From NCBI GenBank assembly GCA_023213395.1, contig CM041465.1, positions 27,039,741 through 27,103,740 on the forward strand: a DNA stretch of 64,000 bases, in the 5' to 3' direction. The DNA is from Cycas panzhihuaensis. Taxonomy: Eukaryota; Plantae; Cycadophyta. The position numbers and the translations under genes are program-made. This document shows, piece by piece, positions 4,049 through 60,148 of this stretch. The stretch's first letter is position 1, and every line of letters starts with the position of its first letter. Below the pieces are notes generated by a model. It was not told where the DNA came from. It saw only the letters and a list, made by a program, of their open reading frames with translations, and ran no database searches.

Positions 4049-4060
4049 GCTTTGATACCA
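4049..4060 (-). promoter_or_regulatory. Primer-binding site (tRNA-iMet type) of Copia-1
   Basis: gctttgatacca = revcomp TGGTATCAAAGC (canonical TGGTATCAGAGC), directly adjacent to the LTR-terminal CA (tg at 4061). Confidence 0.85.
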
Positions 4061-8900: not shown

Positions 8901-8908
8901 TATATTAT

Positions 8909-9234
8909 GGAGGAGAAATATTGGAATAATACCCATTTAGGCATATTGGCCTAGGGTTTGGTAGAGATTATGTTGGTATCACTAGCCACACCTAACTAAC
9001 TTATTAGATGTTTGTAGTAAATATTCTAACATTTCTTAATGCCATTTGGTGGTAGACATTGAGTGCTTCTTAATGCTAGTTGGTGGTAGACATTGAGTGC
9101 TTCCTGCTCAATTCTTGCCTATAAATTCATGGGGTCCAAAGGCACTAGTATTCTTTAATATAACCATTATATTAGATTCTACTTTAGCCTGTTTGTGCAT
9201 TCTTTATCCCCTCTAAACCCCCTACATTCCTTCA
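8909..9234 (+). repeat. PPT and probable 3' LTR of Copia-2
   Basis: Purine tract ggaggagaaa (8909-8918) follows the RNase H end. Then ta(=tg)ttggaataat..., a TATA-like cctataaat near 9118, and an end at ...ccttca where host Tat gag resumes. No 5' partner is seen. Confidence 0.6.
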
Positions 9235-9239
9235 TCTAT

Positions 9240-13331: not shown

Positions 13332-13342
13332 CTGCCTCCTTT
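13332..13342 (-). promoter_or_regulatory. Polypurine tract of element A
   Basis: ctgcctccttt = revcomp AAAGGAGGCAG abutting the 3' LTR. The homologous ctacctcctt is at 16838 in B. Confidence 0.7.
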
Positions 13343-13657
13343 GCAGTAGAACCTTGTCACTTTGAAACTTAGATGATGGTGACTACTGCCAATATAAATA
13401 TAGTGAGTGTACACAACTAGTAAGAATAAAATATGTACAGGTCCAAGGGATAATGAGTGTCATGACAGATACGCAGATAGGAAGCACAAGCTAAGGAGGG
13501 ATCTTAGAGTATGATTAGATCTATCTCGAGGCACAAGGCTATAAAATCCTAAGCATGTAGGTGATATAATAAGAAAGATAGTAGTGAAGGTGGGTGCCCC
13601 CTTAGTGGCTCACCAAATAGGTGGTGTGACCTAGAAAGGGTTTGGAAACCTAAAGAA

Positions 13658-13709
13658 TATTAGATAATGTGACAATAATGTTCTTAAGGAAAAAATTTTG
13701 ATAGGTTGG
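13658..13709 (+). repeat. First 52 bp of the Copia D 5' LTR
   Basis: tattagataat...aaattttgataggttgg matches the start of LTR 38376. Confidence 0.85.
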
Positions 13710-16700
13710 TGGAATCGCATCTTTGGGGGGGGGTCGCTAGACTTGGATGAGATTAAGCCAAATGACCAATGGTTTCGGTGGCTATGGACCTACAATGGAA
13801 AGTAAAATAAATCACGCACAAGGGGTGTCCATGTGTCGGAACACAAGTTTAGGACCTACAAATGGAACACAAACTCCTTTGAGGTAACTCTTCCTTGATA
13901 CAGAGTAGTGGATGGATGAGGGATCTCCTGAGTTTCTCAAGTAACCTCAAAAGGTGCCCTCCCATCCTTAGATGGTCGAAGGAGGAAGGAAAGAGATGAG
14001 GGAATGGCTCCTTGCATGAAGGGGTTATGAAAGGGATGATCCTTAATAAGAAAAGAGGAGAAACACGTACATAAACCTAAGGTAGCTTGCTATGTGAGTG
14101 GTGGAGATTGTGGCTGGTTTCGAAATCTAGGCATTGACCTAAAGACTAAACTAGGATGGTCTAGCCTAGAGAAACAAGAAAAATAAAGCGAACAACCTTG
14201 AGAGGAGGTGCTCTCAAGGGGCCAAACCTAAAGAGGATTCTAGGAGTGGCGAGTAAACAAAAAGGGTTATCTTTGTGTTTGTCTTTATTTCATATACAAT
14301 AAAGAACTACAAAGTGAGAGTGTGGTATTTATGGTAATGTTGTGTATTTATGTTTAAAAGAAATTACTTTTTTAAAGTCAAGAAAGTAATACAAATCTCT
14401 CGCTCTCATTTACTTATGCATGCAACCTCACTCTCCTTTTTTTTAAATGCAAGAAGTGGGAGTCAAAGAGATTGCCATATGACATGAAGCTCATGCAAAG
14501 AGTGCAAAGTTACTTAGTGACATATAACAAAATGGAAGGGGCGAATGCATGCAAGTACCTAGACCTCCACTATATGAGCTTATAAAAATAAACAAGCAAA
14601 GTGCAAGAAACCCTACTGATCCTTTCCTTTTCTTTTACTTAAGGGATACTCAAAAGAGGGGGAAAAAAGTAAAGAAAAGAAGGCCAGGAAAAGGAAGATG
14701 TACTTGGGATATGATGACTGAAGTAGTGCTTCCCTCACCATGCTTGTAATCCTTGCCCTTCTCCTAACCATGGATGGTGAGATGGAAGGAGTGCCGACAA
14801 AGAAAGGGGGCTTCCTTACCTTCCCTGAAATAAAAAAGGAAAATAGAAATATAACGAAAGGAAACGTAAAGACTATTATAACTCCACTTTATAATTCCAA
14901 GAGCAAAAGAAAAGTAACTATTGAAAGAAGGGGAATGTACCTAGGATAAAGTCCCTTTTTCCTCCAAGTGTAAAAGAAAACCTACAACCAACGAGGTTTG
15001 CCCTCTCCCAAAAGGTACCAAACATACATGGGACAAATATACAAAATAAAAAGTGACAAGATACGACTATCTTAATTAAAAGAAATATATTAAATATCAA
15101 TATCACTCCTTTTACTTCATATGTTATTTAGTATGCAATATGGGAAAGGAGGGAAAGAGAACAAGGAAGGGTGGTTAGCCTTAGAATGGATAACCCTCCA
15201 AATCAAAGGTCCTTAATGCTACCCCCAAATATCAGGATAAAGGGGTAAACAAATACAAGCAAGCTTTTAAAAATATAAGCAAAATTGGTAAGAAATATTA
15301 GAAACATTGCAAATATTGTAACATGCAACTTTTGTAAGTTCTGCAAGGTTCAAATCAAGGGACAAAAGGAATATGGAGTGGGGGCTAAGACCCCACCTAT
15401 GTAGGATCTACTATGTTGGTTGCAAGTGCAGCAATGGGTTACCTATGCTGATGCTAGTAATGATCTACTCTCTAATGGTCCTTTGGGATCTCCAGGGAGG
15501 TATGGAGAAGGAGAGGTGAGGAGAGAAGGGTGTTGCCTTTGAGGAAAAGGCACGTTGGCTGCAGAACCCAAACTATAGATCCTTTCACTCTCTACAGATA
15601 CCTTTTCTTTGTTACCTCCTTGAAGAAACTAGGAAGGAACCAAAATAAGGAGAAGACAGGCTGGGAAAAAGGAGGGTTTACCTCTCATTACAATGGAAAG
15701 GAAAGAAGAAAGTTGCTATAAAAAGGTACTGGAAAAAATATCTATATTACTCAAGGTAAAAGAAACAAAAAATGTACTTGTTATAGGCCGATCTGATGTA
15801 GATCTACCTCTGAAATTAGGTGAGGAAGTAGGCCCTATGGGATTTGTAGGAGAGGACCCCAATGGTGCAACAAATAGAGGTAAAACTGGAGCAAGAAAGA
15901 TGGCTAGAGCTTGCTAGAGCATTTGGAGCACAATCTTCCCTTGGTTGGCCACATTGTAGACCTGCAACCCGCATGTCTTAAGCTATAGGAGCCTAGCATC
16001 TGGTTGAGAATTAGGTGTAGCAAAACTTGATCCTATTTGTAGGGTGTTTTTGGAGGAGATTGTGGTAAAAATAAATGAGAGAGACAAAAAATGAGGGTGT
16101 TTTTGTGTTTTTAAATCCAACCCTAGCTCAATCGAATGATTAGGGTTTAATTTGGGTAAGAAACAAGTCACTACCACATGATAATTTCATAATAAATGCG
16201 AAATTAGCTGTGGAAAATCTAAAAAATGACTGTGGATAGTCACCCCATGCTAAACTTAGTGGTACCGCGAGGTTTGTAATGGTACCAAGAAGTTTAATAT
16301 GGTATGGTAGAAACAAAGCAAAAAGAGAGAGAGGAGAGCCCATAAGCTCCAAAAGAGGGGGAAACTAAGGCCCAAGGAGGTATGGTACTATATCCAAGTG
16401 GCCAAAAGAGGGTTGCGGGACTCAGAGAGGCCATAACGAGAAAGCAATAAAGGTAAAAGTTTCCTTAAAAGGACAATGAGTGGACGTAGTATGACGACCA
16501 GGCCTAGGTAGGGTGCTAAGGGTCATGATGCACTAACAAGTGATGTGGTGTAGGCTATGGAAGCCAAACAATACTTGGGGATATTGTAGAGACATGGAGG
16601 AGGGTTATGGAGCACTGCAGGATATGTATCCCTAAATTGTCATAAGTTGAAGAGGTACAAAGATGCAATGTGGTCAAGTAATGGATGCATAGTGGTCATG

Positions 16701-16837
16701 TAGTAAATTAATCATCATGCAATGTAGGTGAAGTACCTCAATTTACCTTTTCTAAAACTGACAAGGGTAGGGATAGAAGCATGCCTATACTTACTTGAGT
16801 CGACTCACCCATGTCCATTCTTAGTAACTGAGAAACA
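13710..16837 (-). repeat. 3' LTR of element B
   Basis: Colinear with 25599-26592 + 31576-33732. Confidence 0.92.
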
Positions 16838-17283
16838 CTACCTCCTTGGCAGCAGAGCCTCGCTACTCGAAAGCATAACACGACATCGAATGCTAGCAAG
16901 AAAAGGTTAGAAAAATACTGGATGCGTGGGTAGGGAGATGAGAGAGTGGCAGTATAGGGGTTGCCTATGCATTGCCCTAGAGTCGACTGGTAGTGATAAT
17001 GGATGAGGAGGATGCCCCCATCGCATGAGTGTAAGATAAATAGTGGTGATAACCATGAACATGATCAAACAAACGCTATGAATGGGATGCTATATACATA
17101 GGAGAGTCAAAACAATGGGGACTATATACTGAGGGTGGTACGAAGGGTAGAGTGAAGAAAACAAACTTGATGGTCACTATAGTTTAACATTATTAGTGGC
17201 AAACTTTTAAAGGTATGAGCGGATCACCATCTGGAAGATGGAATGACCCAGAACCTGGGCGCTTGGGTGATCGAATAGGTCCC

Positions 17284-17705
17284 TCAAGGGGGATCATCAA
17301 GGAGAGGGAAGTGATACTTGAGGATGAGACAGATGAGGCCATCCACCTCAATGTTGTAGTCCTGGGAAATATGTCAGATATCTATGGAAGAGAAATGGGA
17401 TAGAGGGACCTAACGGTTGAGGTGAGGGTCCTCATGCATGGGTAACGCACCTTGTAAACCTAGGTGAGATGTGACATAATAACCTGAGAGTTACAAATAA
17501 GGATGATAGGTCCATAGTGGAAGCAGAGTGTATTAGTAAGAGCTTTAATAACAACTGTGTACTAAGCTTCATTATTAGTAGCTTCGGGAAGGAAGACCCT
17601 AGAATGCATGTAGTCATATCCAGAGGGGTCATGGAGGATCCATATGGTAGCAAAAGGGCCTGGGTTACCATGATTTCCTCCATCACTAAAGATAAGTAAT
17701 GCCAT
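17284..17705 (-). pseudogene. Stand-alone aRH ORF of element B
   Basis: MALLIFSDGGNHGNPGP...ATNNEA*YTVVIKAL...LICNSQVIMSHL...HISQDYNIEVDGL, with stops and one frameshift near 17400. Same start as in A. Confidence 0.82.
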
Positions 17706-18443
17706 GGTAAGGAGATGAGGGTCTCGGTTAGATGGTAGAAGAAGAAAAGTGACAACAGGGTCGACAAGTAAAGAAAGGTGTGATAAGTAGTGATAGGGCT
17801 ATGAAGTACTCAGAAGGCTGTGAATAGGGATTATGGAGGATAAGAGAGCCCTAAAAGGAGGCTACTTGGGGATGAGGAGACTGACCCAATGGAAGGGAAG
17901 GAAATTATAGCGTAAAGGGCCCCTTTGGGGTCCCAAAGGTTGTTCGAAGGGCCTTGGTGAGGTCTAGGATGAGGGAGGCACTTCTTTTAGGAGCCCTAAA
18001 GGCTCAGGTGGACATAAAAAATGGACTCAGGGTGGTGAAAGGATCCAAAGGAGTATAAAGATGGGTATGGTTTGGAGTAGTATGAAAATCAAAATAAAAG
18101 GGATCTGTGAGAGATTGAAAGGGTCATCATAATGACACTAAAGAAGCTTAAAAGGGAGGCCATAGAGGTGAAACGAGGGATGGACCTAGAAGGTAAAAAT
18201 AATATAGGAAAAGAGGTGGTCGTAAGGGCTATCATAGTGGGAGGAAAGGAGGAAGTGCTCATTGGGGCCCCTGCCTATATAAAGGAAACTTGATGAAAAT
18301 GAAGTTCATTTTCACGAGCTCACGATTGATCTGGAGCCCTTTCCTTTATGTAGTGGAGTGCGACCCAACTTTAGAGGTATGCATTGGGAGATCTGACCAT
18401 CGAATCGAGGTGTAGAGATAGCTGATAAGACTGAGACAATGAG

Positions 18444-20875
18444 ATGGCAGTAGTAAGGCTAGGCCCAGTGAGTGGATCACCCCCTACCCATTCCATTTTG
18501 TCCATTACATTTAATGTATTTTCTATGCTTTTTTAGGTGATTTTTGGCCCCTTAAGGGTGATTTGAGACCCTTTGAAGCCTAATTTGGACCTAGAGAGGG
18601 GGAGGACTAGGGCATTAGATAGCCTTAGTCCTAGTGGGCTTGGTTGTGGTCCGCTTAGATGAAAACTTTTGGGTTTCTTGAGCAATCCACCCTCCCCCCT
18701 TTTGAGGGGGGTGTAAAGGGCCCTATAATAAAGATCGCAGTGCTACGAAGTTTACTGCGGGGCCATTGTACCATGGAGTTTGATACGGGGTAGAGGGGAA
18801 CAACCAAAAAAAGGAAGAGAAATGGCCTAGGAAGGTACCAAACTCAGCCCCAAGAGGGCAAGAGGCAAAATGAGGGTAGGTGGGCATAGTGTGGAGTGTT
18901 ATGACTGACTCTTAGGTTCTTTTTGTAGGTGGTTATTGTGGTAGATAACCATGAGAACATAGGGATTGCTATAATGAGTTTTATAGAGATGATGATATAG
19001 GGGGGATAGATGGACATTGGGACGATGTGGGTTGCTGAAGATTATTAGGACCCCCCAATATATATTGGATCAGTGCCTCTTGGTAGATATAGTCTTCCAT
19101 CGGAATCGTAGGTAACAAGTCTTCCACCTTCCCTAAGTGGGGGATATTACTATCACGCCATGAGACATCAAGGGGATCCTGGGTGTACAAGTAGGAGGAG
19201 CACCAACATCATTAGGCATGTTGCCCAACATGGATACCACACACAAAAAAGTGGCCATATTTTTCACTATCTAAGATAAGTGGGATAGATGCAGGATATC
19301 AGTCCAGACAATGGTTATGTCGTGAATTTCTTAGTTGAGGAAGTTGATTACACTGGGCATTCTATTCTGGATCTCATAGAAATAGAGCTATAGAGACATT
19401 CCAGGTAGTTGGATGGACACAATCAAGAGATGTGAGGCTAAGGAGAGACTAGATTAGGCCGCCTTGATAGTGATGAACATGGTTGCCTAATTAGATGCTA
19501 TTAGGGTGGTAGGGAGAGGAGGATTCTCCTATTTCACACTGCTATAGTGTTATTTTTTTGACCATTTTAGGGAATTGGTGCCACTAGGAGGACCTCACTC
19601 TATTTTGGCGAGAGCGCCGATGGTGCACATATGGCAGACTCAGTTCAAGGGGACTGAGGATCAAGCACATGTCAGGTAGTCAGTGGAGGTGACATCGCTA
19701 GACCTCCTCACTTTGGCAGACTACATAGTGGACCCATATAGAGGAGTGAGGTGGGATAGTGATGATGAGGTAGGAGATGGTCTTAGAGATGGTGGCGATG
19801 ATGGAGGTGATGGGGTAGGCCCATCAAGAGTGGCAAGAGAAGAGGCAGGTCCATCAGAGGTTATAGGAGGAGAGGCAGGGCCTTCATGAGATGTAGGAAG
19901 GGGTGTAGGTCCTTCACGAGCTACAGGAGGAGAGGTAGGTCCTTTAGGAGCTACAAGAGGAGGTAGGCCACCCCGCACACTAGCGCAGAGATTAAGGGTA
20001 GTTAGTAGGGCTCTAGTGGCAGCAGTGGCAAAGGGGGGAGAAGACACCTCGATAAGCTAGAAGGTAGGCAAGGTGGTACCCAAGGCTAAGGAGGAGGTAT
20101 TAGTATTCGAGAGAGGTCCCCAAGAGGAGGTGATTATCTGAGTCGAGGAGCTATCCATCCCAGGAGGTGAGATACTACTTTTTCCTATCATCTTTTGACC
20201 ACTAGGCGATTAGATAGTTTGCTTTAATTTGGATTTGAGGATTTGATATATGGATGTATGGACTAACACGTGACGTGTTTGACTTAGCAGGGGCAGCAAA
20301 GATGGGGAGGTTGATAGAGGTGGTAGTTTGGGAGGTATTCCCCCAGGTCTACATGGAGGGACAACCTCCCATCTAGGCTACAGAGGAGCCTCGATCAGTA
20401 GGGGCATACATAACGTCATTCACCCCACTGATTAGAGCCAAGGATATATGCGTAGTGGAGTCCTAAGAGCACCAAGCGAGGGTGGAACAACTACAGGGAG
20501 AGCTGGACAGGACCCACATGGAGAGAGATACCTTATGAGGTTGAGTTCAGGCATTGGAGGCTTAAGGTAGAAGAGCAGGTGGTGATATGGAGAGCTGCAT
20601 TAGGATAGCTGTGCTAGAGGAGAGGCTCAGAGGAGTAAAGGGAGAGAGGGATCGTATCCAAGCGTAATACAATCAACTGGTAGATCAGATGGTTATGAGG
20701 TCATCACAGAGAAGGACTCAGACATACATGATGATGACGACCTTGAGATAAGGGGATCAAGGCTGGGAGCTCATAGTGGTGTAGGAGGAGCCTAGGAGGC
20801 ATGTGGTCTCCTCGGGAGGGATCACACCAGCCAGGAGATGATACCCCTTAAGCAAAGGAGCACCAACGAGTAGGG
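18444..20875 (+). pseudogene. Antisense PMD gene of element B, intron-containing, with EAGPS repeats and a coiled-coil-like tail
   Basis: One frame reads LDQCLLVDIVFHRNRR*QVFHLP*VGDITITP*DIKGILGVQVGG...LL*CYFFDHF...LDLLTLADYIVDPY. Intron 20167-20290 restores the frame. Ends are approximate. Confidence 0.8.
20167..20290 (+). other. Predicted spliceosomal intron (phase 1) in the PMD gene of B
   Basis: GAG|GTGAGA donor, T-rich body, branch-like GACTAAC and TTAGCAG acceptor. Splicing joins the frames, and the same CCAGGAG|GT donor occurs in A. Confidence 0.7.
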
Positions 20876-21399
20876 TATGATGGGTTTTGATTGGGAAAGC
20901 ACTAGACCTCTAGGGAGTCACCATATGTTACCACATGATTGTAATCCTCCCTACAAGGATTCCAGCTTCCCTAGGATGATGTACTATATTATTTTATATG
21001 ATATGATTCTTTATGTATATAGACAGGGGCCTATTGGCATCCTATTTAATCAATGATGATGGTGTTATGATGGTGTATGATGTTGTATTTATGGTTTATT
21101 TATTTATATCTTTATGTGTATGTGGACACGGGTGCACAAGTGCATGAGAGACTGTAGATCATGACAATTTTGGTTGGTTGTTATGTGACTTTTGTTATTA
21201 GATTACTTGGGTGATGCCTATACTTCCTTTCATGCAGGGCCATACTCATAGGGGGCATACATGACCACCATGAGCATAGGTGATAGGTATGTGTGAGGCT
21301 AGGAGATGGAGAGCCATGCATGTCCATTGACAGAACATAGCATATATACAAAGGAAGTGCTAACGAAGAAAGAGTATAGGTACTCGAGCATGCAGTCCT

Positions 21400-24300
21400 A
21401 GTTGGAGTGCATTTCCAAGCTTAGGAGCGATGGAAACCAACACATCCAATAAGGAGAAAAGGTTTTCCTCAGGAGGGAAACATAAGATGCCATAGGAGAA
21501 AATGTAGAGATAGAAAAGCCACCCTAAACCATCATTCCACCTATGGTTAGGAGGAATGAAGATACGCTTAGAGTGGTAGTTTGGGCTCATTTTAGAGCAA
21601 AAAGAGAGGAGTGATATGGCGAGCTTACACAGGGATAGGGACATGCCACACATAGAATGAAGATGGATGACGAAGGGTAGGCCCTATATAGCTAGGCCTA
21701 TAAGTAAAATGGTTTTGGTTAGAACCAGATGAGTGCGATGGACCTAATACGTGATGGATCACGCGGTAAGGTTATATCTGAGTAAGACTGGTTCTAGTCC
21801 TGGGTGAGGACCTAGAGCGTGAAGAAGAGATACCTTTACGAGGGGTTCATCGACACTGACACCTATGTGAAGTTGCTCAGGGAGGGTGAGGAAATGGAAA
21901 AAGTGGCTAGTTTAGAACCAACAGCTCAGGAGCTAATGTAGAATAAAGAGAAGAGGGAATATCTAATCATGGTATCTCTCTAGGTGTACGTGAAACCAGG
22001 GTGACACGTTAAGGAGGGGGCTCATGGCCCTCACTATCTAACTTAGAATCATCCATGATGGCTAGGTAACCATAATTACCGATGTTAATAAGGGAAAACC
22101 TGACTAAGTTTGGCTCATGATAAGGCATAGGTTCTATTTGATAAAGACCAGTCTATTGAAAAAGGGGCCCCATAGAAGGGATAACCTCCTTAGGATCATT
22201 ATCTTCATCATCAAAGATAGCCTAATAGGTTGGATGAGAAGTGTGAGATGGTAGAGGCTCATGGGTGACAACTTTAACTCATCCTTCATGGACAAACTTA
22301 AGTTGCTCCCAATGCGAGGAGTAAGTTGCTCCCATTTGGTCAAGCCATGGTTGGCCCAACAGGAGGTTTTACTCCACATCGATATCGAGTACAACAACAT
22401 CTATAGAAATGATCTTTCCTCTTAAGGTGAGCAAAAGGGAGACTGTCCCTAAGGGGGACTTCTCGATCCCATCATACCCTTGGCATTTCCAAGGGATGAA
22501 CTCAAGTGCTACTATGCCTAGCTCCTTAAGCATACACATAGGCATAGCATTAACCAAGGAGCCATTATCTATGATGGTCCTCTTTATGATAAAATCAGGA
22601 GTGTCAACAAAAATGACAAATGGGTAATACAAAAGCTTCTCCTGTTTATTGCGATATGGTAGATCTCAGGGATCAAATAAGATGATATGTGGTCCATAGG
22701 AGGCGATGCCTATAGCATGGATGGAAGCATCTTGTTGGTCAAGAGCTTCAAGAAGAAGAGTGCATTGCTTAAGACAACTTCTCAAGACATCCATCATAGA
22801 CATCCCTATGACCACGGTGTGAAGCTTATCAACGATGGAGAAGGGCTTTCCCTTCGTGGTAGGTTGGGAAAGCACCCTTTAGAAATCATAATGACTAGGG
22901 CATACAATAATGGTCTTGGGAAGCATGGGGATTTTTGGAGGAGGGACTTCTAGAGGAGGATCAAGGTAAATAGTGGAAGAAGAGGCACCAGTTGCCACTT
23001 TAGCTGCTTGGGACTGAGTTAAGGCATATAACACTATAGTCTTAAGCATTTTAATGACTCTCTTTCCCTTGTTTTGGGATCGAGAAGGGGAAGGAGTTCA
23101 GTGGTTGGGAGAACTAGAAGAAGAGGAAGAGTTCCTTACACCCTTCCCTTTAGCTTATGAAGGGCGAGGGTTTGGGGACCTTCCTCTATTTTAGTTACCC
23201 TTTTTATGGGTGTTGCGATCACATTCCCCATGTTTGAGGAAAGGATCCTTGTGGATGGGTTGGTCTAGGTTAGGCCTAAACACCCATTTGGGGGAAGAGT
23301 CATGTTGTAGGGCAGCTCTAGGGTGTTGGGCCCTACATTGTGAATCTTTGTGGAAGTATTCCCTATGGACGAAACACCACTTCTTCTCTAAGGAGGAATC
23401 TGGCTTTCTCGTTTGAGAAGACTAGGTATTACCACCCTTGGGGGGAGCGGATTAAGAAGCTTGGTGGACTGATTTGTGCGAAGTGGGTGATGAAAGGGCT
23501 TGGAGTTTAAGCTCCTTCATGGTACATTCGAAAGAACATATAGCAAAAGTTAAGGGATCTAAGTTCTTCTTTGTCGAATGAGATGAAGACATAGGGGGCT
23601 GTTGGACATTTGTATCGCAAGGTGGGGGAGGTGCCTCACACCATTGTGAGGACCTAAGAGGCTTTTTGAGACCCACTTAGATCTCAATTGTCTCGAGAGC
23701 CAAGCACTTGGCTATGGTAGAATCACACATTGTTTCCCCCATGTTGAGGACTTCAACATGGACTTCAGGACAAAGGGCATTAACAAAGAGATCTCGCTTT
23801 AACTCCTTAGGCAAGGTTGTCTTTGTAGAGTGGAGAAGATCATGAAAGCATCTCACAAAGTCATGATTCATCTCATTGTGAACTTGTTTAAGAGACAAGA
23901 GAGCCTTCATTCCACTCTCGAAAGGATGAGCTACGCTAAAATAATTGACGAACTAGTTAACAAGTTGTTAGAATAAGTGGATAAAGTGCACTAGAAGCCG
24001 ATAGAACCATAAAAGGGCATCAACTTGGAGGGAGCATGGAAAGAGTTTCATTAGGATATGGTCATATTCCCAAAAATTGATGCATGCCATAGAAAAACTT
24101 CTAACGTACTCTGTCAAGTCTTGTGAGGAGGTCCCATTGAATTTGGGAGCCTCAGGAGGGTGAGGCAATAAGTTAGTTCTTAGCGCCTCAATGGATAGAG
24201 GTGTTGATCTATAATCCATGAAGGGGTGTTCCCTTGATTGGACCATAGGATCAATGGAAGATGGAAGAAGAGGGAGACAAGGTTGCTTGAATCCTCCTTA

Positions 24301-25445
24301 GGAGACTTGGTTCAAAAGAGGATATTGACTTCCTATCGTTTGGTGGGAAGGAGCTAATCCCGCATTCGAAGGAATTTGCATATGGGCAGATGGGTACAAA
24401 AGACCCATCCCCCCTTATGGGTATGCTCCTTGTTAGAAATGAGCTAGAGAGGTGATGCCTTGGGAGGGGGCTTTCCCTCCTTATAAAGGCACAATATGAG
24501 AAAAAATATAAGAGGATGGAATGGCAGGGTGTGAAACCAGGTTTTGCCTGTATGGGTTGCTTATAGGTGGTGCAACGACATACAAATGCAAAAGATCCAC
24601 TCGATAAACTAGAAGAGGGCTTCCCTTACCATGCCCCCATGATTGAGAAGCATAACTTGGAGGTAAGTAAAGGGAAGGATCCCTAAGTTGAGCTTAGGAA
24701 TGTGTGGGGGTGGGCCCCACACAACTAGAAGTAGGGGCATGCACAAGTCCCCTAGGTCTAACAGGGGGCAGATAGACTATAGTTAGTTGGGATGTAGCTA
24801 TTTGACTGAAGAGAGGTATACTCAACCCAAGTTGGGAAGAGGAAATACCTTGGGTGGTTCTTAAGGAACATGGATCATAGGGAGAGGAAGACAAAGTGAG
24901 GGATGCCCTTATTATAGGTAAAGGAGTTGAACGAGATGGATGAGGTAGAGCAGATGTGGAAGAAGGAAGCACAATGCTTCGTAAGATATTATCCAACCAC
25001 TTAGGATGTGATTAGAGGCTGGCAGCTTGGAAGCACTAGTTAAGGGCTTACACAACATCCATGGGAGGGGTGCCTACCTGATCATAAGAGGTGGAAGGGT
25101 CCTCATATAAGGCAGAGCCCATAGGATGATCCTCATCAGAGTCACCATCAAGGTGATGGAACTCTAAAGGAGATGACATGTCCACTGTATGAGTGGAGAG
25201 GTGATGGAATTATGGGTGTTCTTGGTCACCCGGGTAAAAGATAGGGTTCTCACCCTCTTGGGTGGGCCCTTGGAAGGAAGTGGATGGATCATGAGACTCA
25301 GAGACGTAGGCATGATATGCCCAGTCTGAAGGGAATCCTTCCATGGTCACATTGAAATCTGACGAAGGAAGGGGATGATAAGAGGAGTCTTCCAACAAGG
25401 AAGGAAGGCCTTGTAAGTGATGAGAGAATCATTGCATATAAGTTT
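21400..25445 (-). pseudogene. Element B gag-protease plus conserved C-terminal extension (no RT/INT)
   Basis: ORF pieces 23968-24246 (PPEAPKFNG, MKLFPCSL..ALLWF), 23677-23910, knuckle KKWCFVHREYFHKDSQC (~23340-23385), and protease IIDNGSLVNAMP / LLLGQPWL. Confidence 0.85.
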
Positions 25446-25579
25446 CCCCTAAAGATTGGAAGGAAAAGAGATAATGAGGTGGTAAATGTTAGGGGTTTCC
25501 CAACAGATTGAGGAGACCTACCAGGGAGGAGGTAGCACCAACAGAAAAGGGAGAACGGGTTAATCCCTTACTGGCATAT

Positions 25580-25597
25580 TCCTCAGTATGGTTGCTA
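25580..25597 (-). promoter_or_regulatory. PBS of element B (tRNA-Arg-like)
   Basis: Revcomp TAGCAACCATACTGAGGA, 1 nt from the LTR and homologous to the PBS of A. Confidence 0.7.
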
Positions 25598-26592
25598 GTG
25601 GAATTGCACCTCTTAGGGGGTTACTAAACTTGGATGAGATCGAGTCAAATGACCAACGGTTTCAGTGGTTATGGACCTATAATGGAAAGTGAAAGTAATT
25701 ACCCACAAAAGGTGCTTGTGCATCAAAACATAGGTTTGGGACCCACAAATGGCGTATAAACTCCTTTGAGGTAACTCTTCCTTGATACAGAGTAGTGGAT
25801 GGATGAGGGATCTCCTTGATTTCCCAAGTAACCTCAAAAGGGGCCCTCCCATCCTTGGATGGCTAAAGGAGGGAGGAAAGAGGTGAGGGAATGGCTCCTC
25901 ATGTGAAGGGGTTATGAAAGGGATGATCCTTAATAAAAAAAGAGGAGAAACACACACGTAAGCCTAAGGTAGCTTGCTATGTGAGTGGTGGAGATGGTGG
26001 TTGGTTCCATAAACTAGGCATTGACCTAAAGACCAAACTTGGATGGTCTAGCCTAGAGAAATAAGAAAAATAAAGAGAACAACCTTGAGAGGAGGTGCTC
26101 TCAAGGGGCTAAACTTAAAGAGGATTCTAGGAGTGGCAAGTCAACAAAAAGGGTTATCTTTGTGTTTGTCTTTGTTTTGTATACAGTAAAAAACTGCAAA
26201 GTGAGAGTGTGGTATCTATAGTAATGTTGTGTGTTTATGTTTAAAAGAAATTATTTTTTAAGGCAAGAAAGTAATGCAAATCTCTCTCTCTCTCTCTTGT
26301 TTACTTATGCATGCAACCTCACTCTCCTTGTTTTTTAAATGCAATAAGGGGGAATCAAAGAGATTCCCATATGACACAAAGCTCATGCAAAGAGTGCAAA
26401 GTCACTTAGTGACATGCGACAAAATAGAAGGGGCAAGTGCATGCAAGTGCCTAGACTTCCACTACATGAGCTTATAAAAACAAACAAGCAAAGTGCAAGA
26501 GACCCTACCGATCCCTTCCTTTCCTTTTGCCTAAGGGATACTCAAAAGAGGGGGAAAAGAGTAAGGAAAAGAAGGCTAGGAAAAGGAAGAGG

Positions 26593-26901
26593 TGTTAGAT
26601 AATATGATAACAATGTTTTAGAGGCTAAAATTTTGACAGGTTGGCAGCACGGTTTCCCTCCCAAACTTTCGTGGGGGGGTTCTAAGGGGGGCAGAAGCCC
26701 CCCTTGGTTGGGGGGATGCGGGGGGTTTACCACGTTATATCAGGTGTATATGTGATGCTTGGCTTTCTTATTCATTTTATTACATTATCTCTAGTTTAAG
26801 AATTTGCATGTTAAATTTTAGTTTCGGTTCCTGTAACTAGTTGAAAAATAGTTTAGATCTTGGTGGAAGTTTCAGGTTATTGGGATTTTATCTTCTCAAC
26901 A
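26593..26901 (+). repeat. 5' LTR of Copia C (internally deleted, 309 bp)
   Basis: Matches the start and end of 30920-31570 but lacks ~340 bp of the middle. Confidence 0.88.
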
Positions 26902-26974
26902 AGTGGTATCAGAGCCACTTTTATTTTTAGAGTATGTTTGCGAAGGTTTTGGTGTCAGAATTTTTCTATACCAA

Positions 26975-29900
26975 ATGGCGAAACTAGCGAATGTAAAGTT
27001 CAAGGTGGAGAAATTCAATGGTAAGAACAACTTTAAGTTGTGGAAATTGAAAGCATATGATGTTCTAGTGCAATAAGATTTGTACAGAGCTCTTGCAGGC
27101 AAATTAAAGAAACCTGCAAGGATGGACAATGATGAATGGGATGATCTAGATAAAAGGGCTCTTAGCTTAATATGATTATGTTTAGCAGATGAAGTTCTAT
27201 TCAACATCGCAGGGGAGCAGACAGCAGCAGGATTATGGACCCGGTTGGAAGGCTTGTATATGACCAAATCAACGACAAATTGAATTTACTTGAAGAGGCA
27301 ACTATACTCATTACGAATGAAGAAAGGTAAAAAAATTACTGACTATTTAAATGTTTTCAATACTCTTATTTATTGATTAGCTAGTATCGATGTCATAATT
27401 ATACCTTACTATGTTTATTACCAGAATCCTAGGATAATATTGTCACCTCAATTAGTTTTAGCACTATAGATGAATTAGGTTATGATTCTTTTGTGAGTGC
27501 TTTACTAATGGAAGAAGTGAGGAGAAAGTCTAGTCTTCAAACCTCCACACTAGAAGCTATGACAGCAAAGGTAGAATAATTGAGAGAGGACAAAGCTCTA
27601 GGGACACATCGAGGTTAAATTTAAAAGGCAAGAAGAGTAAGCTCATATGTTAGCACTGTAATAAGATAGGTCGCCTCAAGAAGGATTGCTACAAAAGGAA
27701 GGAGTTCCAAAAAAAGGAAGATCTTGCCAAGGAGGCTAATCAGGTGGAGTCAAATTAAGATACAAATGATGATGTCTTGGTTGCTTGTAATGTTTTCCAT
27801 TATTGGTTATTAGATTCAGGTGCTTCACACCACATGTGTCCACACAAGAGTTGGTTCTCATCATACCAACCTCTTAATGGCGGTGATGTGCTTATGGGAA
27901 ATGAAGTTTCTTATAAGACAGTAGGCATTGGTAGCATCATAATTAACATGTTCGATGGTGTAGTGAGAACATTAACTAAAGTTAGACATGTAGCTAATCT
28001 GAAAAAGAATCTATTTTCCTTGGGTGAACTAGATTTTGGTGGTTATAAATACACAGATCATGAAGGAGTTTTAAAGGTGTCAAAGGGCACTTTGGTTATA
28101 TGAAAGCCTTAAAGAAAGGAAACCTTTATATTTTAGTGGGAGGTACAGATGTCAGTCATGCAACTACAATATCAAAGATTGTAGAAGATCCAACTCAGTT
28201 ATGGCATCAGAGACTTAGGCACATGAGTGAGAGAGGACTTAAGGTGCTGATGAACTGTAAGTTATTTCCTAACTTATAACTTTCAGATTTGGCCTTTTAC
28301 AAACATTGTATTTTTGGAAAGTAGTGTAGACTTAGGTTTAAAGTAGGGAGTCGCACTAGTAAAGGTGTTCTAGATTATGTACATTCAGATGTGTGGGAAC
28401 CAGCCCCTACAATATCTTATGGAGGATCATTGTATTTTATCATATTTATAGATGATTACTCCAGAAAGGTATGGGTCTATTTTTTGAAAAGGAAATATGA
28501 AGTTTTCAGTGTGTTTAAGCATTTAAAGGCTCTAGTTGAGAAGAGCACTAGCAAGTTAATTAAATATTTGAGAACTAACAATGGAGGTGAGTTTAACTCG
28601 TTGGAGTTTGAGAAGTATTGTAGAGAAGCTAGGATTGAAAGGCATAAGACCACTAGCTATACTCTGCAGTAGAATGGCATAGCTGAGTGCATGAATAGGA
28701 CACCCTTGGAAAGAGTAAGAAGCATGGTAAGTAATGTAGGAGTGGAGCCGGGCTTATAGGTAGAAGTTGTTCAAACAACTTGATATTTGGTAAATAGTTC
28801 ACCATCACTTATAATAGATTGTAAGATTCTTGAAGAGGTATGTACTAGACATCCATTTCATTATTCAAATTTGAAAAATTTTGGTTGTGATGCTTATGCC
28901 TTGATTGATAAAAGTCAACATTCAAAGTTAGACCTAAAATCCAAGAGATGTATCTTTGTTGGTTATGGTGATAGAGATGGTGTGAAGGGATATAAGTTGT
29001 GCGATCCTACTACCTATAAAATCACTATTAACAGAGATGTTGTATTTGATGAATCTCCCTTTCTAAAATTAGATAGTATAGAAGTTGAAGTGAAACATAA
29101 GTAGAAAGTTGAAAATTAATAGGTCAAGTTTGAAACCCAACCATCTTTAGAAACATAATAGTAGAAAGATCTTTTTGAAGATGAATCTATAGCAGATATA
29201 TAGTAGTATGTGGACACTCCTCCACCTACTGTTAGAAGATCTATACAAGTTAGTCATCCACCTAACATGTATAACCCTTCTATTTCTCGTGCTTTAGTTT
29301 CTAATAATGGTGAGCCTACATGCTATCAGGAAGCAGTAGATGATATCCATAGTAAGAAATGGAAGAGGGCTATGCAGGAAGAGATAAATGCTTTGAAGAA
29401 AAATAATTCATGGGACTTGGTAGAACTTCTACATGGAAGGAAGACTGTTGGTTGCAGGTGGGTTTTTAAGAAGAAAACATATGTTAATGGAAAGGTTGAT
29501 AAATACAAGGCAAGATTGGTGGCTAAAGGCTTTGTACAAAAAATAGGTATTGATTTTCATGAGATATTTTCATCAGTTATCAAACTAGTTTCAATTCAAG
29601 TTCTATTAGCATTGGTAGTTTCTCTTGATTTGGAGTTGGAGCAGTTAGATGTAGAAACAACTTTTCTACATGGAGATTTAGATGGGGAGATCTATATGGA
29701 TCAACTAGAAGGGTTTGTACAGGATGGTAGGAAAAGACTTGTTTGTAGGCTAAGGAAATCATTATATGGCCTGAAGTAATCACTTAAGCAATGGTACAAG
29801 AAGTTTAATGCCTTCATGGAGATCTAAAATTTTAAAAGAAGTGAGTATGATCATTATGTTTACTTTAAATTCTTCGATAATGGTTTATTTATTATCTTGG

Positions 29901-30871
29901 TATTGTATGTTGATGACATACTAGTTGCAAGCAAGAGCATGGCAGAAATCAATAAGTTAAAGGCTCAATTGGCTAGGACTTTTGATATGAAGGATCTAGG
30001 AACTACAAAATAAATCTTAGGTATGGAGATACATAGAGACAAGAAAAATGGTAAGCTATAATTATCATAGTAGAAATATGTAGAGAAGGTGCTAACCAGG
30101 TTTGGTATGGCAAATATGAAACTAGTGAGTATCTCGTTGGCTTATCATTTCAATCTTTCTTCGAGTATGAGTCCTAGCAATGAAGAAGATAAGAATTATA
30201 TGTCTCATGTACCTTATTCTAGTGTACTAGGAAGTTTGATGTATGCCATGTTATATATAACACCTGGCATTTCACATGCAGTTGGTGTAGTAATTAGGTT
30301 TATGGAAAATCCAGAAAAGGAACATTAGGCAGCAATGAAATGGGTGCTTCAGTATTTAAGAGGTACAAGTGACTATTGTATTACCTTTAGAGGTATAGGT
30401 AATCAGGTTTGTGGATGTGTTGATTCAGACTTTGTAGGAGATTTAGATAAGAGAAGGTATGCTTCAGGTTATATAATCACTCTTGCAAATGGTCCAGTTA
30501 GTTGAATGTTAAAATTGTAGAGCATAATTGCATTATCAACTACATAAGCTGAATATATTACTGCAGCACATGATTATGAAGAAGCAATCTAGTTATAGGG
30601 TCTATTGGTTGAGCTTGGAAGGAAACAGGAAAAGGTAAAGGTATTTTGTGATAGTCAAAGTTCCATTTACTTAGCAAAGAATCCAACTTATCATAGTAGG
30701 ACAAAGTATATTATTCTTAAGTACCATTTTGTTAGACAAGTTGTGAAAGTAGGTGGAGTGGCACTTGAGAAGGTTAACACAAAATAGAATTGTGCTGATA
30801 TGTTCACAAAAGTAGTACTATTAGAGAAGTTCAAATGGTGTTTGACTTCTCTTGGCTTGTAGAAAAGGTGA
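26975..30871 (+). pseudogene. Copia C gag-pol, disrupted
   Basis: MAKLANVKFKVEKFNG..., WLLDSGASHHMCP, FIDDYSRKVWVYFLK, YKARLVAKGF, LYVDDIL, VFCDSQS. Confidence 0.93.
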
Positions 30872-30919
30872 TGAATGGTTCAGGAAAGGTATCATGTAAA
30901 TTATTGTCAAGGTAGAGAT

Positions 30920-31570
30920 TGTTTAATAATTTGACAACAATATTTTGGAGGCTAAAATTTTGATAGGTTGGCAGCATGGTTTCCCCTGCAAACTTTCGCG
31001 GGGGATTCTAAGGGGTGTGGGAGCCCCCCTTGGCCCAAGGGGGATGCGGGGGGTGTTGGAACGCCTCCCGTAAAGAGGGGGTTTGGGGCTGATAGCCCCT
31101 GACCCAAAAAGCTAGCACTGAAAAGTATACTAAATTGTAAAGAGAATCATGGTTGTTCACTTAAAATACCCTAGATTCTATGGTCGAGATTTGTACCTTG
31201 TATGACTATTTCATGTAGCCCGATTACGGGTGTTTTTCATTATGTTTGATGTATTGGATGTACTATGAGGAATTGGGCAGCTGGTTATTGTTGCTGTAAG
31301 TATTCTACTACAGATTATGTACATTTCTCCATTCTTTGATAATAAAGATCGATACCTTTCCTGTATGGATGTTTCCCTAGCACATTGCTAGGATTTTACC
31401 ATGTTATATCATGTGTATATGTGATGCTTGTCTTTCTTATTTATTTTATTATATTATCTCTCATTTAAGAACTTGCATGTTAAATTTTAGTTTTGATTCC
31501 TATAACTAGTTACAAAATAGTTTAGATCTTGGTGGCAATTTCAGGTTATTGGAACCTTGTCTTCTTAATA
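30920..31570 (+). repeat. 3' LTR of Copia C
   Basis: Follows the PPT, is homologous to the D LTRs, and ends ctta-ata before the TSD. Confidence 0.9.
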
Positions 31571-33737
31571 AGATGTACCCAAGATGCAACAGTCGAAGTA
31601 GTGCTTCCCTCACCATACTTGTAATCCTTGCCCTTCTCCTAACCACAGATGGTGAGACTGAAGGAGTGCTGATAAAGAAAGGGGGCTTCCTTACCTTCCC
31701 TAAAATCAAAAAGGAAAAAAGAAATATAGTGAAAGGAAATGTAAAGTCTATTGCAACCCCACTTTATAAATCCAAGGCAAAAGAAAAGTAACTATTGAAA
31801 GAAGGGTAATGTACCTGGGACAAAGTCCCTTTTTCCCCCAAGTATAAAAGAAAACCTACAACCAACGAGGTTCACCCTCTCCTAAAGGGCACTAAACATA
31901 CGCGAGATAAATATACAAAATGGAAAGTGACAAGATACAGAACTATCTTAATTAAAAGAAATGTATTCAATATCAATATCACTTCTTATGCTTCATATGT
32001 TGTTTAGTATGTAATATGGGGAAGGGGAGAAAGAGAACGAGGAAGGGTGGTTAGCCTCAGAATGTCTAACCCGCCAAATCAAAGTTGCTCAACGCTGCCC
32101 CTAAGTATTAGGATGAAGTGGTAAACAAATGTAAACAAGCTTTTAAAAATACAAGAAAAAGCAACAAGAAATATTGTGAATGTTGCCAATGCTACAAAAG
32201 TTGCAACATGCAACTTTTGCAAGATTTGCAAGGTTCAAATCAAGGGACAAAAGGAATATAGAGTGGGGGATAAAACCCCACCCATGTAGGATCTATTGTG
32301 CTAGTTGCAAGCATAGCAATGGGCTACCTGCATTACTACTAGCAATGATCTACTCTCCAATGGTCCTTTAGGATCTCCAGGGAGGTATGGAGAAGGAGAA
32401 GTGAGGAGGGAAGGGGGTTGCCCTTGAGGAGAAGGTACATTGGGTGTAAGACCCAACTTATGGCTCCTTTTACTCTTTGTAGATACCAGTTCTTTGTTGC
32501 CTCCTTGAAGAAACTAGGAAGGAACTAAAAGAAGGAGAAGACAGGCTAGGAAAAAGGAGGGTTTACCTCTCGTTATAATATAAAGGAAAGAAGAAAGTTG
32601 CTCCAAAAAGGTACTGGTAAAAATATCTATGTTACTCAAGGTAAAGGAAACTAAAAATTGACTTGAGAGTACCTATTATAGGCAGATCTAAGGCAGATCT
32701 ACCTATGAAATTGGGCAAGGAAGTAGGCCCTATAGGGTTTGCTGGAGAGGACCCCAATGGTGCAACAGATAGAGGTAAAATTGGAGCAAGAAAGAGGGCT
32801 AGAGCTTGCTAGAGTATTTGGAGTACAATCTTCCCTTGGTTGGCCATGTTGTAGACCTGCAACCTGCATATCTTAAGCTGCAGGAGGTTGGCAACTGGCT
32901 AGGAATAAGGTGTAGCAGAACTTGATCCTATTTATAGGGCATTTTTGGAGGAGATCGTGGTAAAAATAAATGAGAGAGACTGGAAATGAGGGTGTTTTTA
33001 GGTTTTTAAACCCAACCCTAGCTTAATCGAGCAATTAGGATTTAGCTTGAGTAAGAAACAAGTCACTGCCATGTGGTAATTTTATAATAAATGTAAAATT
33101 AGCCATGGCAAATCTAAAAAATGATTGTAGATAGTCACCCCATGGTAAACTTAGCGGTACCACAAGGTTTGCAATACTACCACAAAGTTTAATGTAATGT
33201 GGCAGAAACAATACAAAAAGAGAGAAAGGGGAGCCTAGAAGCTACAAAAGAGAGGGAAACTAAGGCCGAAGGAGGTATGGTACCGTATCCAAGTGGTAAA
33301 AAGGGAGTTGTGGGACTAAGAGAGGCCATAACGAGCAAGCAATGAAGGTAAAATGTTCCCTAAAAGGACAACAAGTGGACGCTGGGTGATGACCAAGACT
33401 AGGTGAGGTACTAGGGGTCATAATATATTAGCAAGTGATGTGGTGTGGGCTACAAAAGCCAGACAGTACTTGGGGACGTTGTGGAGACATTGAGGAGGGT
33501 TATGGAACACCACAGGATATGTATCCCTAGATCATTATAGGCTGAAAAAATGTAAAGATGCATAGTGATCAAGTAATATATGCATATTGGTCATGCAGTA
33601 AATCAATCATCATGCAATATAGGTGAAGTGCCTCAATCTACCTTTTCTAAAACTGACAAGGGTAGGGATAGAAGCATACTTGCACTTACCTGAGTCGACT
33701 TACACATGCCCATTCCTGATAGCTAGGAAATAGTTGG

Positions 33738-38375: not shown

Positions 38376-39037
38376 TGTTAGATAATATAACAAAAATGTT
38401 TTAGAGGTAAAAATTTTGATAGGTTGGTAGTGCAATTTCCTCCCTTAAACTTTCTTAGGGGGATCTAAGGGGAGCAGGAGCCTCCCTTGGTTGGAAGGTA
38501 TGAGGGGAGTTGAACCTCCCCACCCCATAAATAGGGGTTCAGGAGTAGTAGCCCCTAATCCAAAAATCTAGTATTGTAAAACATACTAAATTGTAAAGAG
38601 AATCATGGTCGTTTACTAAAAATATCCTAGATTCGATGGTTGAGATTTGTGCCTTGTATGACTCTCTTATATAGCCTGATTTAGGGTGTTTTTTCATTAT
38701 GTTGATGGAATTTGATGTATTGGATATATTATAATGAGAAATGATGACTAGTTATTATTGCTATGAGCATTCTACTACAGATTATATATATTTCTATATT
38801 CTTGGATAATAAAGATCGATACCATTATTGTATATATGTTTTCTTAGCATACTACTAGGGTTTTATCATTTTATATCTAGTGTATATATGATTATTTGGC
38901 TTTTTGATTTATTTATTATATTATCTTTAGTTTAAAAACTTACATATTAAATTTTAGTTTCAATTCCTATAGCTAGTTGTAAAATAGTTTAGATCTTGGT
39001 GGGAATATTTGGTTATTAGGACCTAGTTTTCTCAACA
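38376..39037 (+). repeat. 3' LTR of Copia D
   Basis: TG...CA termini, preceded by PPT and followed by the TSD. Confidence 0.93.
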
Positions 39038-39237
39038 AAGAAGACCTTAGGGGAGATGAGGGGTTGCCTTATTGTACCCACTAAGGATAAGGAGTTAGGA
39101 AAATAAAGGTATCAGTTGACATAGTTTAACCTTATCAGTGACCCTCTCTCAGAGGTAAGGAGAAAGAAAAAGCATAGGGTTGCCCCTAGGGGTCTCTAAT
39201 GGGTAACCTATAAAATCAACTAAGAGTCCCCTTAAAG

Positions 39238-40369: not shown

Positions 40370-45760
<5,391 letters not shown>

Positions 45761-50557: not shown

Positions 50558-50558
50558 A

Positions 50559-59856: not shown

Positions 59857-60148
<292 letters not shown>

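Follow-up and report, generated by a model that had tools for sequence, protein, structure and literature searches.

The window analysed here, a 64,000-nt stretch of the Cycas panzhihuaensis (Cycadophyta) genome (GCA_023213395.1, CM041465.1, 27,039,741-27,103,740, forward strand), holds two LTR retrotransposons, A and B, both on the minus strand and both entangled with copia insertions. Self-BLAST and recounted junctions place A at 11291-52653 and B, with a nested copia element (copia-1) included, at 13710-33732, which reproduces exactly the coordinates of B given in an earlier sequence-only reading. Copia-1 (26593-31570, from the same two approaches) splits the 5′ LTR of B; B is located within the 5′ LTR of a second copia element (copia-2, 13658-39037, TSD AAGAA), and copia-2 is located within A. 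The insertions therefore followed one another in the sequence A, copia-2, B, copia-1. Without the nested inserts, A and B each measure about 12.5-15 kb, with internal regions of 8.4-8.8 kb.

Short target site duplications flank both copies, perfect in B and degraded in A, as had been read from the letters. B carries GTTGG on either side (13705-13709 and 33733-33737), and this 5-bp duplication is validated by an empty-site paralogue in the window, the intact 3′ LTR of copia-2 (38405-38450), since the uninterrupted site has one GTTGG. For A, GTTAC faces ATTAT, with three of five positions matching and both mismatches being transitions. A and B are two independent integrations, each with its own duplication.

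The LTRs, all defined by self-BLAST on the minus strand and named in element orientation, are those of B at 13710-16837 (3′, 3.13 kb) and at 25599-26592 plus 31571-33732 (5′, proximal and distal parts on either side of copia-1), and those of A at 11291-13331 (3′) and 50559-52653 (5′). Their lengths are about 3.1 kb in B and about 2.04-2.10 kb in A. Within each copy the pair has diverged to a K2P of 0.151 in B (85-88% identical) and 0.187 in A (82% identical). Between copies, BLAST finds no similarity except at the termini, in agreement with the earlier description of unequal LTRs alike only at their ends. The termini reported then (TGTTTCC...TTCCA) are the reverse complement of the plus strand; in each copy, one LTR terminus has been altered by a transition. 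With TG...CA-type termini, a direct LTR pair and a short TSD, A and B both qualify as LTR retrotransposons.

Direct reading of the sequences next to the LTRs identifies a polypurine tract (PPT) that is present in both copies and conserved between them: AAGGAGGTAG in B (16838-16847, minus strand, reverse complement) and AAAGGAGGCAG in A (13332-13342, minus strand), where it opens the 3′ end of the internal region that runs up to the copia-2 insertion (13332-13657, minus strand). PBS-like 18-mers adjoin the 5′ LTRs at 25581-25598 in B (CTAGCAACCATACTGAGG) and 50541-50558 in A (TTAGTGACCATATTGGGG), both read directly as reverse complements on the minus strand. They are conserved, with 15 of 19 positions identical, and both begin with TAG, not TGG. 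ARAGORN found no tRNA genes in the window.

We tallied A/B mismatches in the nucleotide alignment by codon position of the proposed frames. Mismatches are in excess at the third position in the gag core (p down to 4e-9), in the PMD gene (p about 1e-6) and in the RNase H ORF (p = 2.5e-6), and an HSP-based count of the mismatches agrees with this periodicity.

The first unit is a sense gag-PR ORF in one frame (minus strand), at 22250-25428 in B, from the codon periodicity of A/B differences, and at 47193-50381 in A, from the A/B alignment. Counted over 25596-22250, the B frame comprises 1115 codons with 23 in-frame stops. It includes, all on the minus strand, a capsid-like gag core (23700-24264; 48607-49168 in A) with 57-74% amino acid identity to that of A and one further relative (P0017, 65 aa, 81% identical); a CX2HX4HX4C zinc-knuckle-like motif (23335-23376), read directly and equally spaced in A; and a protease-like region recognised by its motifs (22282-22665, IIDNGSLVN ... 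LLGQPWL; 47193-47576 in A), in which periodicity is weak. A post-PR segment (21676-22218, minus strand) is conserved with A and shows neither significant periodicity nor a domain. Pfam matched neither gag nor PR at any threshold, and searches of PDB sequences and of folds were also negative. The two labels are what the frame reads as from its motifs, its position and the strong codon periodicity of the A/B differences.

The second unit is an antisense gene (plus strand), delimited by the A/B alignment at 18412-20725 in B and 40369-45652 in A. In B it consists of an N-terminal stretch (18412-18993), the putative PMD in a single frame (18996-19680; 13 stops over 18996-20057), an acidic tail built of a 30-bp repeat present four times (19680-20057) and, in a different frame, a coiled-coil-like stretch (about 20470-20725). 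The same parts follow in A (N-terminal stretch from about 40369, PMD 40892-41520, acidic tail 41594-41760, coiled-coil-like stretch about 45430-45652, all plus strand), where the gene is broken by (TA)1729 at 41881-45338. Pfam returned PMD as the sole family for a 37-aa piece of A (40925-41035, profile positions 15-48, E = 0.16) and gave no PMD match in B. A stretch with the motif FHLP.(V)GD.TIT occurs in both copies, interrupted in B by in-frame stops, and third-position periodicity in the PMD frame is strong.

The third unit is an archaeal-type RNase H (aRH) ORF in sense orientation, of about 134 codons in B (17300-17705, minus strand, ATG 17703-17705, with in-frame stops and an approximate 3′ end) and at 39235-39639 in A (minus strand, ATG 39637-39639). 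It is 53% identical in amino acids between A and B. Pfam RNase_H matches at E = 4.8e-4, below the gathering score, and a profile of A, B and relatives matches archaeal-type RNase HI structures in the PDB (E = 9e-14). The initial methionine is conserved in five sequences (A, B and the short relatives P0001-P0003), and coding periodicity is absent both upstream of the ORF and in the stretch after it. Since there is no pol, the ATG is conserved and no coding periodicity lies upstream, aRH is a bounded, separate ORF with its own ATG and not a domain of a Pol polyprotein. No polyprotein matching it was found among 1.84 billion representatives, and none of the 16 library hits was one; we therefore infer a Tat origin of aRH from context alone. 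Like Tat-clade elements, A and B have an archaeal-type RNase H, but not as a Pol domain. The ORF is situated shortly before the PPT; some 0.7 kb separate it from the PMD gene, from which it diverges. The spacer between the two genes in B (17706-18411, no strand assigned) lacks coding periodicity and may act as a bidirectional promoter or hold a splice acceptor; in both copies a pyrimidine tract ending in AG stands about 20 nt upstream of the aRH ATG.

The internal regions of A and B are collinear over their entire length at 58-63% nucleotide identity. Because this is far below the identity of 82-88% within each copy's own LTR pair, A and B must have diverged long before they inserted. The alignment breaks at matching offsets from the 5′ LTR (4024 and 4010 bp), and the weakly aligned middle segments (825 vs 852 bp) are homologous. 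We looked for copy-specific deletion breakpoints between A and B and found none, which therefore makes the pol-less plan older than the A/B split. A Pfam search of sense pieces of at least 35 aa in the PR-to-PMD interval of both copies returned no RT, Gypsy-RH or INT, and a motif scan of A and B for RT, RH and INT was likewise negative. With lengths accounted for in the 8.8-kb internal region, of which about 0.8 kb is unassigned, there is therefore no room for RT, Gypsy-RH or integrase. The earlier statement that neither copy encodes these enzymes is borne out, and RT and INT are absent from both of the diverged copies available (n = 2), which goes beyond a single-copy loss. The plan ascribed to the pair (gag-PR, antisense PMD, aRH, PPT) holds in its order and collinearity; its gag and PR have no HMM or structural match, and the Pfam match of its PMD is faint.

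We consider it probable that A and B are ancient, decayed copies representing two diverged subfamilies of one pol-less Ty3/gypsy lineage of Tat/OTA type; as they have no RT, they cannot be placed phylogenetically within Tat. The RT/INT-less plan is common to two separately integrated, collinear and anciently diverged copies, and for this reason a long-lived lineage mobilised in trans, as the sequence-only reading proposed, remains the best inference. Both copies are pseudogenised and are the only ones available (n = 2); contig scans found no further copies, and no autonomous partner was seen in the data examined.

Antisense PMD(-CC) eORFs and aRNH are both known in Tat elements (PMC4408406, PMC6317226). 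The gymnosperm lineage TatIII (PMC4408406, PMC6317226) resembles A and B in having an archaeal-type RNase H 3′ of the integrase site, and its PMD eORF, which runs antisense towards the 3′ end, has a putative counterpart in them; Cycas is itself a gymnosperm. However, TatIII has a full pol with aRNH at the Pol C-terminus, followed by the antisense PMD eORF (PMC4408406), so that aRNH is fused to Pol and convergent with a downstream PMD eORF, whereas A and B read gag-PR, antisense PMD, aRH and PPT, with no pol and with an aRH that has its own ATG, lies 3′ of PMD and diverges from it. Because one deletion cannot yield this gene order, the simple derivation from TatIII suggested earlier is unsupported. 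The coiled-coil-like tail of the A/B PMD gene is a feature reported only for the angiosperm Tat lineages IV and V. Ogre/Tat lineage V, known from angiosperms (PMC4408406, PMC6317226), has very long LTRs and a 5-bp TSD as A and B do, and its fused Gag-PR frame and its antisense eORF for PMD and a coiled coil, close to the 3′ end, have putative counterparts in them, but it keeps RT, gRNH and INT, with aRNH internal to pol, between RH and INT (RT-gRNH-aRNH-INT).

In a different ancestry, another OTA or an unclassified Gypsy lineage would have acquired PMD and aRH independently, with a LINE or a host gene as conceivable sources of the RNase H. No published Tat lineage has the order gag-PR, antisense PMD, aRH, and acquisition of aRNH is thought to be polyphyletic (PMC4408406); moreover, gag and PR are unmatched by Pfam and PDB, and the RT that would allow placement is absent. 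We nevertheless regard such an origin as unlikely, given that Tat/Ogre-type elements are so far the only ones reported to combine aRH, antisense PMD(-CC) eORF, Gag-PR fusion, 5-bp TSD and very long LTRs (PMC4408406, PMC6317226).

The codon-position data bear on whether the extra genes mattered to their carrier. They show that purifying selection acted on all three units, gag-PR, PMD and aRH, during A/B divergence, and the excess in all three units therefore argues that the cassette was used, beyond mere carriage. It is rather improbable that PMD and aRH were passive cargo of a pol-less, trans-mobilised lineage, as a captured pair or as ancestral leftovers with no role in the cycle: although no function is known for Tat eORFs (PMC4408406, PMC6317226), the search for polyprotein relatives of aRH was negative and the head-to-head layout of the two genes resembles a captured gene pair, the third-position excess in both equals that of the gag core in strength and shows that the proteins were constrained while the lineages still replicated, and the aRH ATG is conserved in all five sequences. 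Finally, old LTR elements are often internally deleted and A and B are old and full of stops, but that each was an autonomous Tat element which lost pol by its own deletion or decay after insertion, the common plan being coincidental, is very improbable in view of the end-to-end collinearity with its matching offsets and middle lengths, the lack of any RT or INT fragment in either copy, and the similarly old aRH, gag-like and PR-like motifs that can still be read.

Under the pol-less Tat/OTA-type reading, the ancestral element would have had three coding units: in sense, a frame of about 1,050 codons (Gag, knuckle, protease and a short extension); in antisense, a gene for a PMD followed by a tail, acidic or made of repeats, and ending in a coiled-coil-like stretch; and, again in sense but separate, an archaeal-type RNase H of about 134 codons with its own ATG. 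It would have encoded no RT, Gypsy-RH or integrase. Its RNA would be packaged by its own Gag-PR products, while RT and IN would be borrowed from an autonomous partner recognising similar termini, PBS and PPT. The aRH may be translated from a separate, possibly spliced mRNA and would work as an RNase H in trans. The PMD protein may have had some regulatory role; the anti-silencing role once proposed for it is pure speculation.

A and B are both long dead and represent no new kind of mobile element. The pol-less plan, once put forward as novel, has been described before: in two GAG-Pro-only "semi-autonomous" Gypsy families of Triticeae, RLG_Sabrina_SA and RLG_WHAM, whose partner is the Athila-type RLG_Wilma (PMC9744471), and in 28 non-autonomous sugar beet families with GAG/PROT only and the TR-GAG elements (PMC13570524). 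All of these share with A and B an LTR and TSD structure, a retained gag(-protease) ORF (in A and B a putative one), family-wide absence of RT and INT, and long persistence and diversification through cross-mobilisation. For none of them, however, has an RNase H or a PMD gene been reported, and TR-GAGs, which stay below about 4 kb and code for GAG alone, differ from A and B with their 8.4-8.8 kb internal regions, 2-3 kb LTRs and extra genes. LARDs and Dasheng-type elements are also large, trans-mobilised and without RT or INT, but the large, conserved internal domain of LARDs does not code for protein, nor does that of Dasheng-type elements, whereas three units of A and B have a third-position excess and are under protein-level constraint. 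Pol-less GAG-PROT families and antisense PMD ORFs in Tat elements are both already described; the apparent novelty is an aRH that forms a gene by itself, placed 3′ of PMD and pointing away from it.

We tentatively suggest that a probably gymnosperm LTR lineage may have uncoupled RNase H from RT: it would have lost RT, Gypsy-RH and integrase and kept, under selection, Gag-PR, antisense PMD and aRH, the last as a gene of its own whose mRNA would arise by splicing or from an internal promoter. If so, RNase H would be a trans-acting accessory factor in partner-driven reverse transcription, an undescribed division of labour among retroelements. Should aRH be confirmed as a stand-alone gene under selection in a pol-less element, the accessory genes PMD and aRH would be added to the functions contributed, and the idea of "cooperative complexes", in which autonomous retrotransposons and semi-autonomous ones join, would reach beyond grasses to another plant group. 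The lineage would then offer a natural experiment on which retroviral-type functions work in trans, and on why Tat elements gained a second, archaeal-type RNase H at all.

By self-comparison and a close look at its junctions, the window resolves into a nest of four LTR elements. Element A (11291-52653, minus strand, LTRs at 11291-13331 and 50559-52653) is one of two diverged, decayed Tat-like LTR retrotransposon copies, and the Ty1/copia element copia-2 (13658-39037, TSD AAGAA) is inserted near its 3' end. The second Tat-like copy, element B (13710-33732, minus strand), lies in the 5' LTR of copia-2, and a further copia element, copia-1 (26593-31570, TSD AGAGG/AGATG), interrupts one LTR of B. 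The coordinates of B agree exactly with those of the sequence-only reading. Since both elements are on the minus strand, the termini it gave (TGTTTCC...TTCCA) appear as their reverse complement on the plus strand. As had been described, the 5-bp TSD of B is perfect (GTTGG) and that of A is degraded (GTTAC vs ATTAT, both differences being transitions). The duplication in B is validated by an empty site, since the intact 3' LTR of copia-2 (38405-38450) carries the same flank with a single GTTGG. The paired LTRs of A have diverged by a K2P distance of 0.187 and those of B by 0.151 (the two halves of the interrupted B LTR were joined for comparison), with transitions prevailing by ~4:1 within pairs, and these values fit the nesting order. 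Between the elements, the LTRs are indeed unlike in length (~2.05 kb in A, ~3.1 kb in B), and BLAST detects no similarity between them beyond the termini.

The internal regions of A and B, by comparison, are collinear from ~170 bp past the 5' LTR through the PPT, at 58-63% nucleotide identity, and measure 8.8 kb in B and 8.4 kb in A after a 3.46-kb (TA)n array is discounted. A middle segment that BLAST initially left unaligned, matched in length between the copies (825 vs 852 bp), shows weak but significant homology (63% over 246 bp, E=5e-12). Given this collinearity and the homologous middle segment of equal length, copy-specific breakpoints are absent, and therefore the plan is older than the divergence of A from B, as judged from two copies that are both dead. 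The interiors differ by ~37-42%, vs 12-18% between each copy's own two LTRs, so the lineage split is much older than either insertion. The claim that two diverged copies share one plan is thus borne out.

To locate coding constraint, we took the positions of A/B differences straight from the nucleotide alignment (B coordinates), a count that is free of amino-acid-based selection bias because amino acids are not used. Strong 3-periodicity is confined to three places, and in each of them the excess differences fall at codon position 3 of the proposed frame. Unit 1, the putative gag-PR (protease) ORF, holds a single phase from ~25430 to ~22250; the signal peaks at a ratio of 2.7-2.9 (p down to 4e-9) in the gag-like core, is present in the N-terminal part, and is weaker across the knuckle and the protease-like part. 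Unit 2, the putative antisense plant mobile domain (PMD) gene on the plus strand, is periodic over 18994-19755 (p ~1e-6), with an additional stretch at 18412-18993. Unit 3, the sense archaeal-type RNase H (aRH) ORF, is periodic over 17281-17650 (p=2.5e-6). In the same alignment, no periodicity appears in the spacer of 0.7 kb separating unit 2 from unit 3, past unit 3, or in the segment following the protease. An HSP-based count gives the same outcome, although an antisense control shows that count to be ascertainment-biased. The third-position excess therefore indicates that all three units were protein-coding and constrained while both lineages replicated.

For unit 3, a 91-aa piece of A matches Pfam RNase_H below threshold (E=4.8e-4), and its B counterpart is 53% identical. 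A profile built from A, B, and a few relatives matches archaeal-type RNase HI structures (3u3g at E=9e-14, the Halobacterium and Sulfolobus enzymes also among them), and matches E. coli RNase HI far worse. Judging by these matches, unit 3 is an archaeal-type RNase H. The ORF spans ~134 codons; a Met three residues ahead of the first strand (MALLI[FY]..GG) occurs in both elements and in the three nearest database ORFs, and in both copies a pyrimidine tract ending in AG precedes the ATG. An exhaustive phmmer search with the A sequence against 1.84 billion representatives returned 16 short matches, all singletons from Logan or ENA and none of them a polyprotein, and neither metagenome nor viral contigs yielded a relative when scanned with a three-sequence alignment. 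The bounded ORF, the common Met, and the lack of polyproteins among the 16 matches argue that the aRH is a stand-alone gene, as the sequence-only reading had proposed.

Unit 2 resembles a plant mobile domain. A motif stretch, FHLP.(V)GD.TIT, occurs in A and B, with in-frame stops interrupting the B copy, where a single frame is retained through 13 stops. The frame is so fragmented that the sole HMM support is a Pfam PMD match at E=0.16, which falls at the expected profile positions. The domain leads into an acidic or repeat tail, formed by a 30-bp tandem repeat in B and a (TA)n array in A, and then into a Glu/Arg/Leu-rich, coiled-coil-like stretch that, read by eye only, is conserved between the copies. 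The array within the tail of the A gene is a near-pure microsatellite (41881-45338, ~1,729 units, 3.46 kb, 93% matches). The suggested anti-silencing role for the PMD protein finds no support in this analysis.

Unit 1 reads as Gag followed by a knuckle (CX2HX4HX4C) and then a retropepsin (IIDNGSLVN ... LLGQPWL). For the gag and PR pieces, Pfam at E<=10 gave nothing relevant and a PDB sequence search gave no match; a homologous-protein search returned one 65-aa match for the gag piece and none for the PR piece. AlphaFold models reached a pLDDT of 43 for the PR piece, which is unusable, and 62 for the gag piece, with Foldseek matches only at E>4. The two labels are thus putative, based on reading, position, and the selection signal. 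In both copies (B 23335-23376, A within 48110-48310) His replaces the second Cys of the knuckle, which may reflect a genuine CHHC variant and not decay. TAA accounts for 16 of the 23 in-frame stops in the B gag-PR frame. The post-PR segment (B 21676-22218, A 46587-47129) is well conserved between A and B (e.g., HEPNLVRF..I.IG.YGYLAIM.D.KLDS, 68% aa identity) and shows neither significant codon periodicity nor a domain; it is a candidate cis-acting RNA region or, alternatively, a candidate C-terminal extension under weak constraint.

We found no trace of pol. Pfam was run on pieces of at least 70 aa, 25 of them from B and 10 from A, with the A aRH as the sole match, and 20 further sense pieces between PR and PMD gave none; no sense-strand piece matched RT, Gypsy-type RNase H, integrase, or chromodomain, and a scan for CCHC, D[ST]G, YxDD, and HHCC motifs gave no clean match. 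The 8.8 kb of B are taken up by a ~0.17-kb leader, 3.2 kb of gag-PR, 0.6 kb post-PR, 0.8 kb unassigned, 2.3 kb of antisense gene, the 0.7-kb spacer, 0.4 kb of aRH, and a 0.45-kb 3' end, which therefore leaves no room for pol. Moreover, HMM and profile searches still pick out the aRH, which is of the same age, and gag- and PR-like motifs equally old can be read by eye, so a decayed RT should have been visible. The reported absence of RT, Gypsy-type RNase H, and integrase from A and B therefore holds, with neither Pfam-detectable RT or integrase remnants between PR and PMD nor copy-specific breakpoints.

Elsewhere, we saw no host gene in the 64 kb, and the window holds no Rfam family or ARAGORN tRNA. 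Copia-1 and copia-2 are related (~82% identical), both look truncated after the RT start, and measure ~5 kb each without inserts; their PBS, TGGTATCA[AG]AGC, is taken as a putative initiator-Met type. Against named proteins, the nested copia RT piece is 71% identical to Ginkgo, 53-62% to Pinus taeda, and 47-55% to angiosperms. Copia-type fragments (integrase, RT, gag-like) lie in the flanks at 411-3091 (minus), 5915-6244 (plus), and 62221-62538 (plus), and a smaller TA/TG-rich array at ~59728-60177. Purines prevail along the plus strand (G 12,959 vs C 8,919, GC skew +0.185, A slightly above T), largely independently of TE orientation, with only the first 4 kb reversed. CpG is extremely depleted across the window, with an observed/expected ratio of 0.08-0.28 inside A and B and of 0.07-0.09 in the flanks (e.g., 3100-11200, 53000-59000). 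The flank ratio and the background GC of ~30% fit a report for the GC-poor gymnosperm Welwitschia (PMC8275611). Together with the copia RT identities, they hint at a gymnosperm host.

The GAG-Pro-only Gypsy families RLG_Sabrina_SA and RLG_WHAM, named "semi-autonomous", lack RT and INT population-wide, have persisted for millions of years, and are cross-mobilised (PMC9744471); sugar beet holds 28 GAG/PROT-only families, and TR-GAGs occur in several plants (PMC13570524). Antisense PMD extra ORFs (eORFs), aRNH (i.e., aRH), and a Gag-PR fusion, with a coiled coil in some lineages, are Tat/Ogre hallmarks (PMC4408406, PMC6317226). A and B share the aRH with these elements and would share the antisense PMD gene and Gag-PR; lacking the Tat-defining RT, they are candidate Tat members. 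Given these described families and eORFs, neither the pol-less plan nor the PMD gene is new. We could not find a published description of RNase H as a separate gene or of the order gag-PR, antisense PMD, aRH, and the claim of novelty would be confined to these two features. In published TatIII elements, by contrast, aRNH forms the C-terminus of Pol and converges on a PMD eORF that lies downstream, while in A and B it is separate and follows the antisense PMD gene. One RT-RH-INT deletion from TatIII would not give this order, and the proposed TatIII origin is not supported in its simple form.

The best reading of A and B is a "semi-autonomous" element, which would make its own Gag-PR, draw RT and integrase from an autonomous partner, and carry two accessory genes that would matter to it. 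The position of the aRH, a 3'-terminal sense ORF preceded by an antisense gene, would call for a spliced or internally initiated mRNA. PMD and aRH stand head to head on either side of the 0.7-kb non-coding spacer, which may serve both as a bidirectional control region. Altogether, the original observation is confirmed and its interpretation upheld in part, and the single feature worth follow-up is the aRH as an apparently stand-alone gene under selection.
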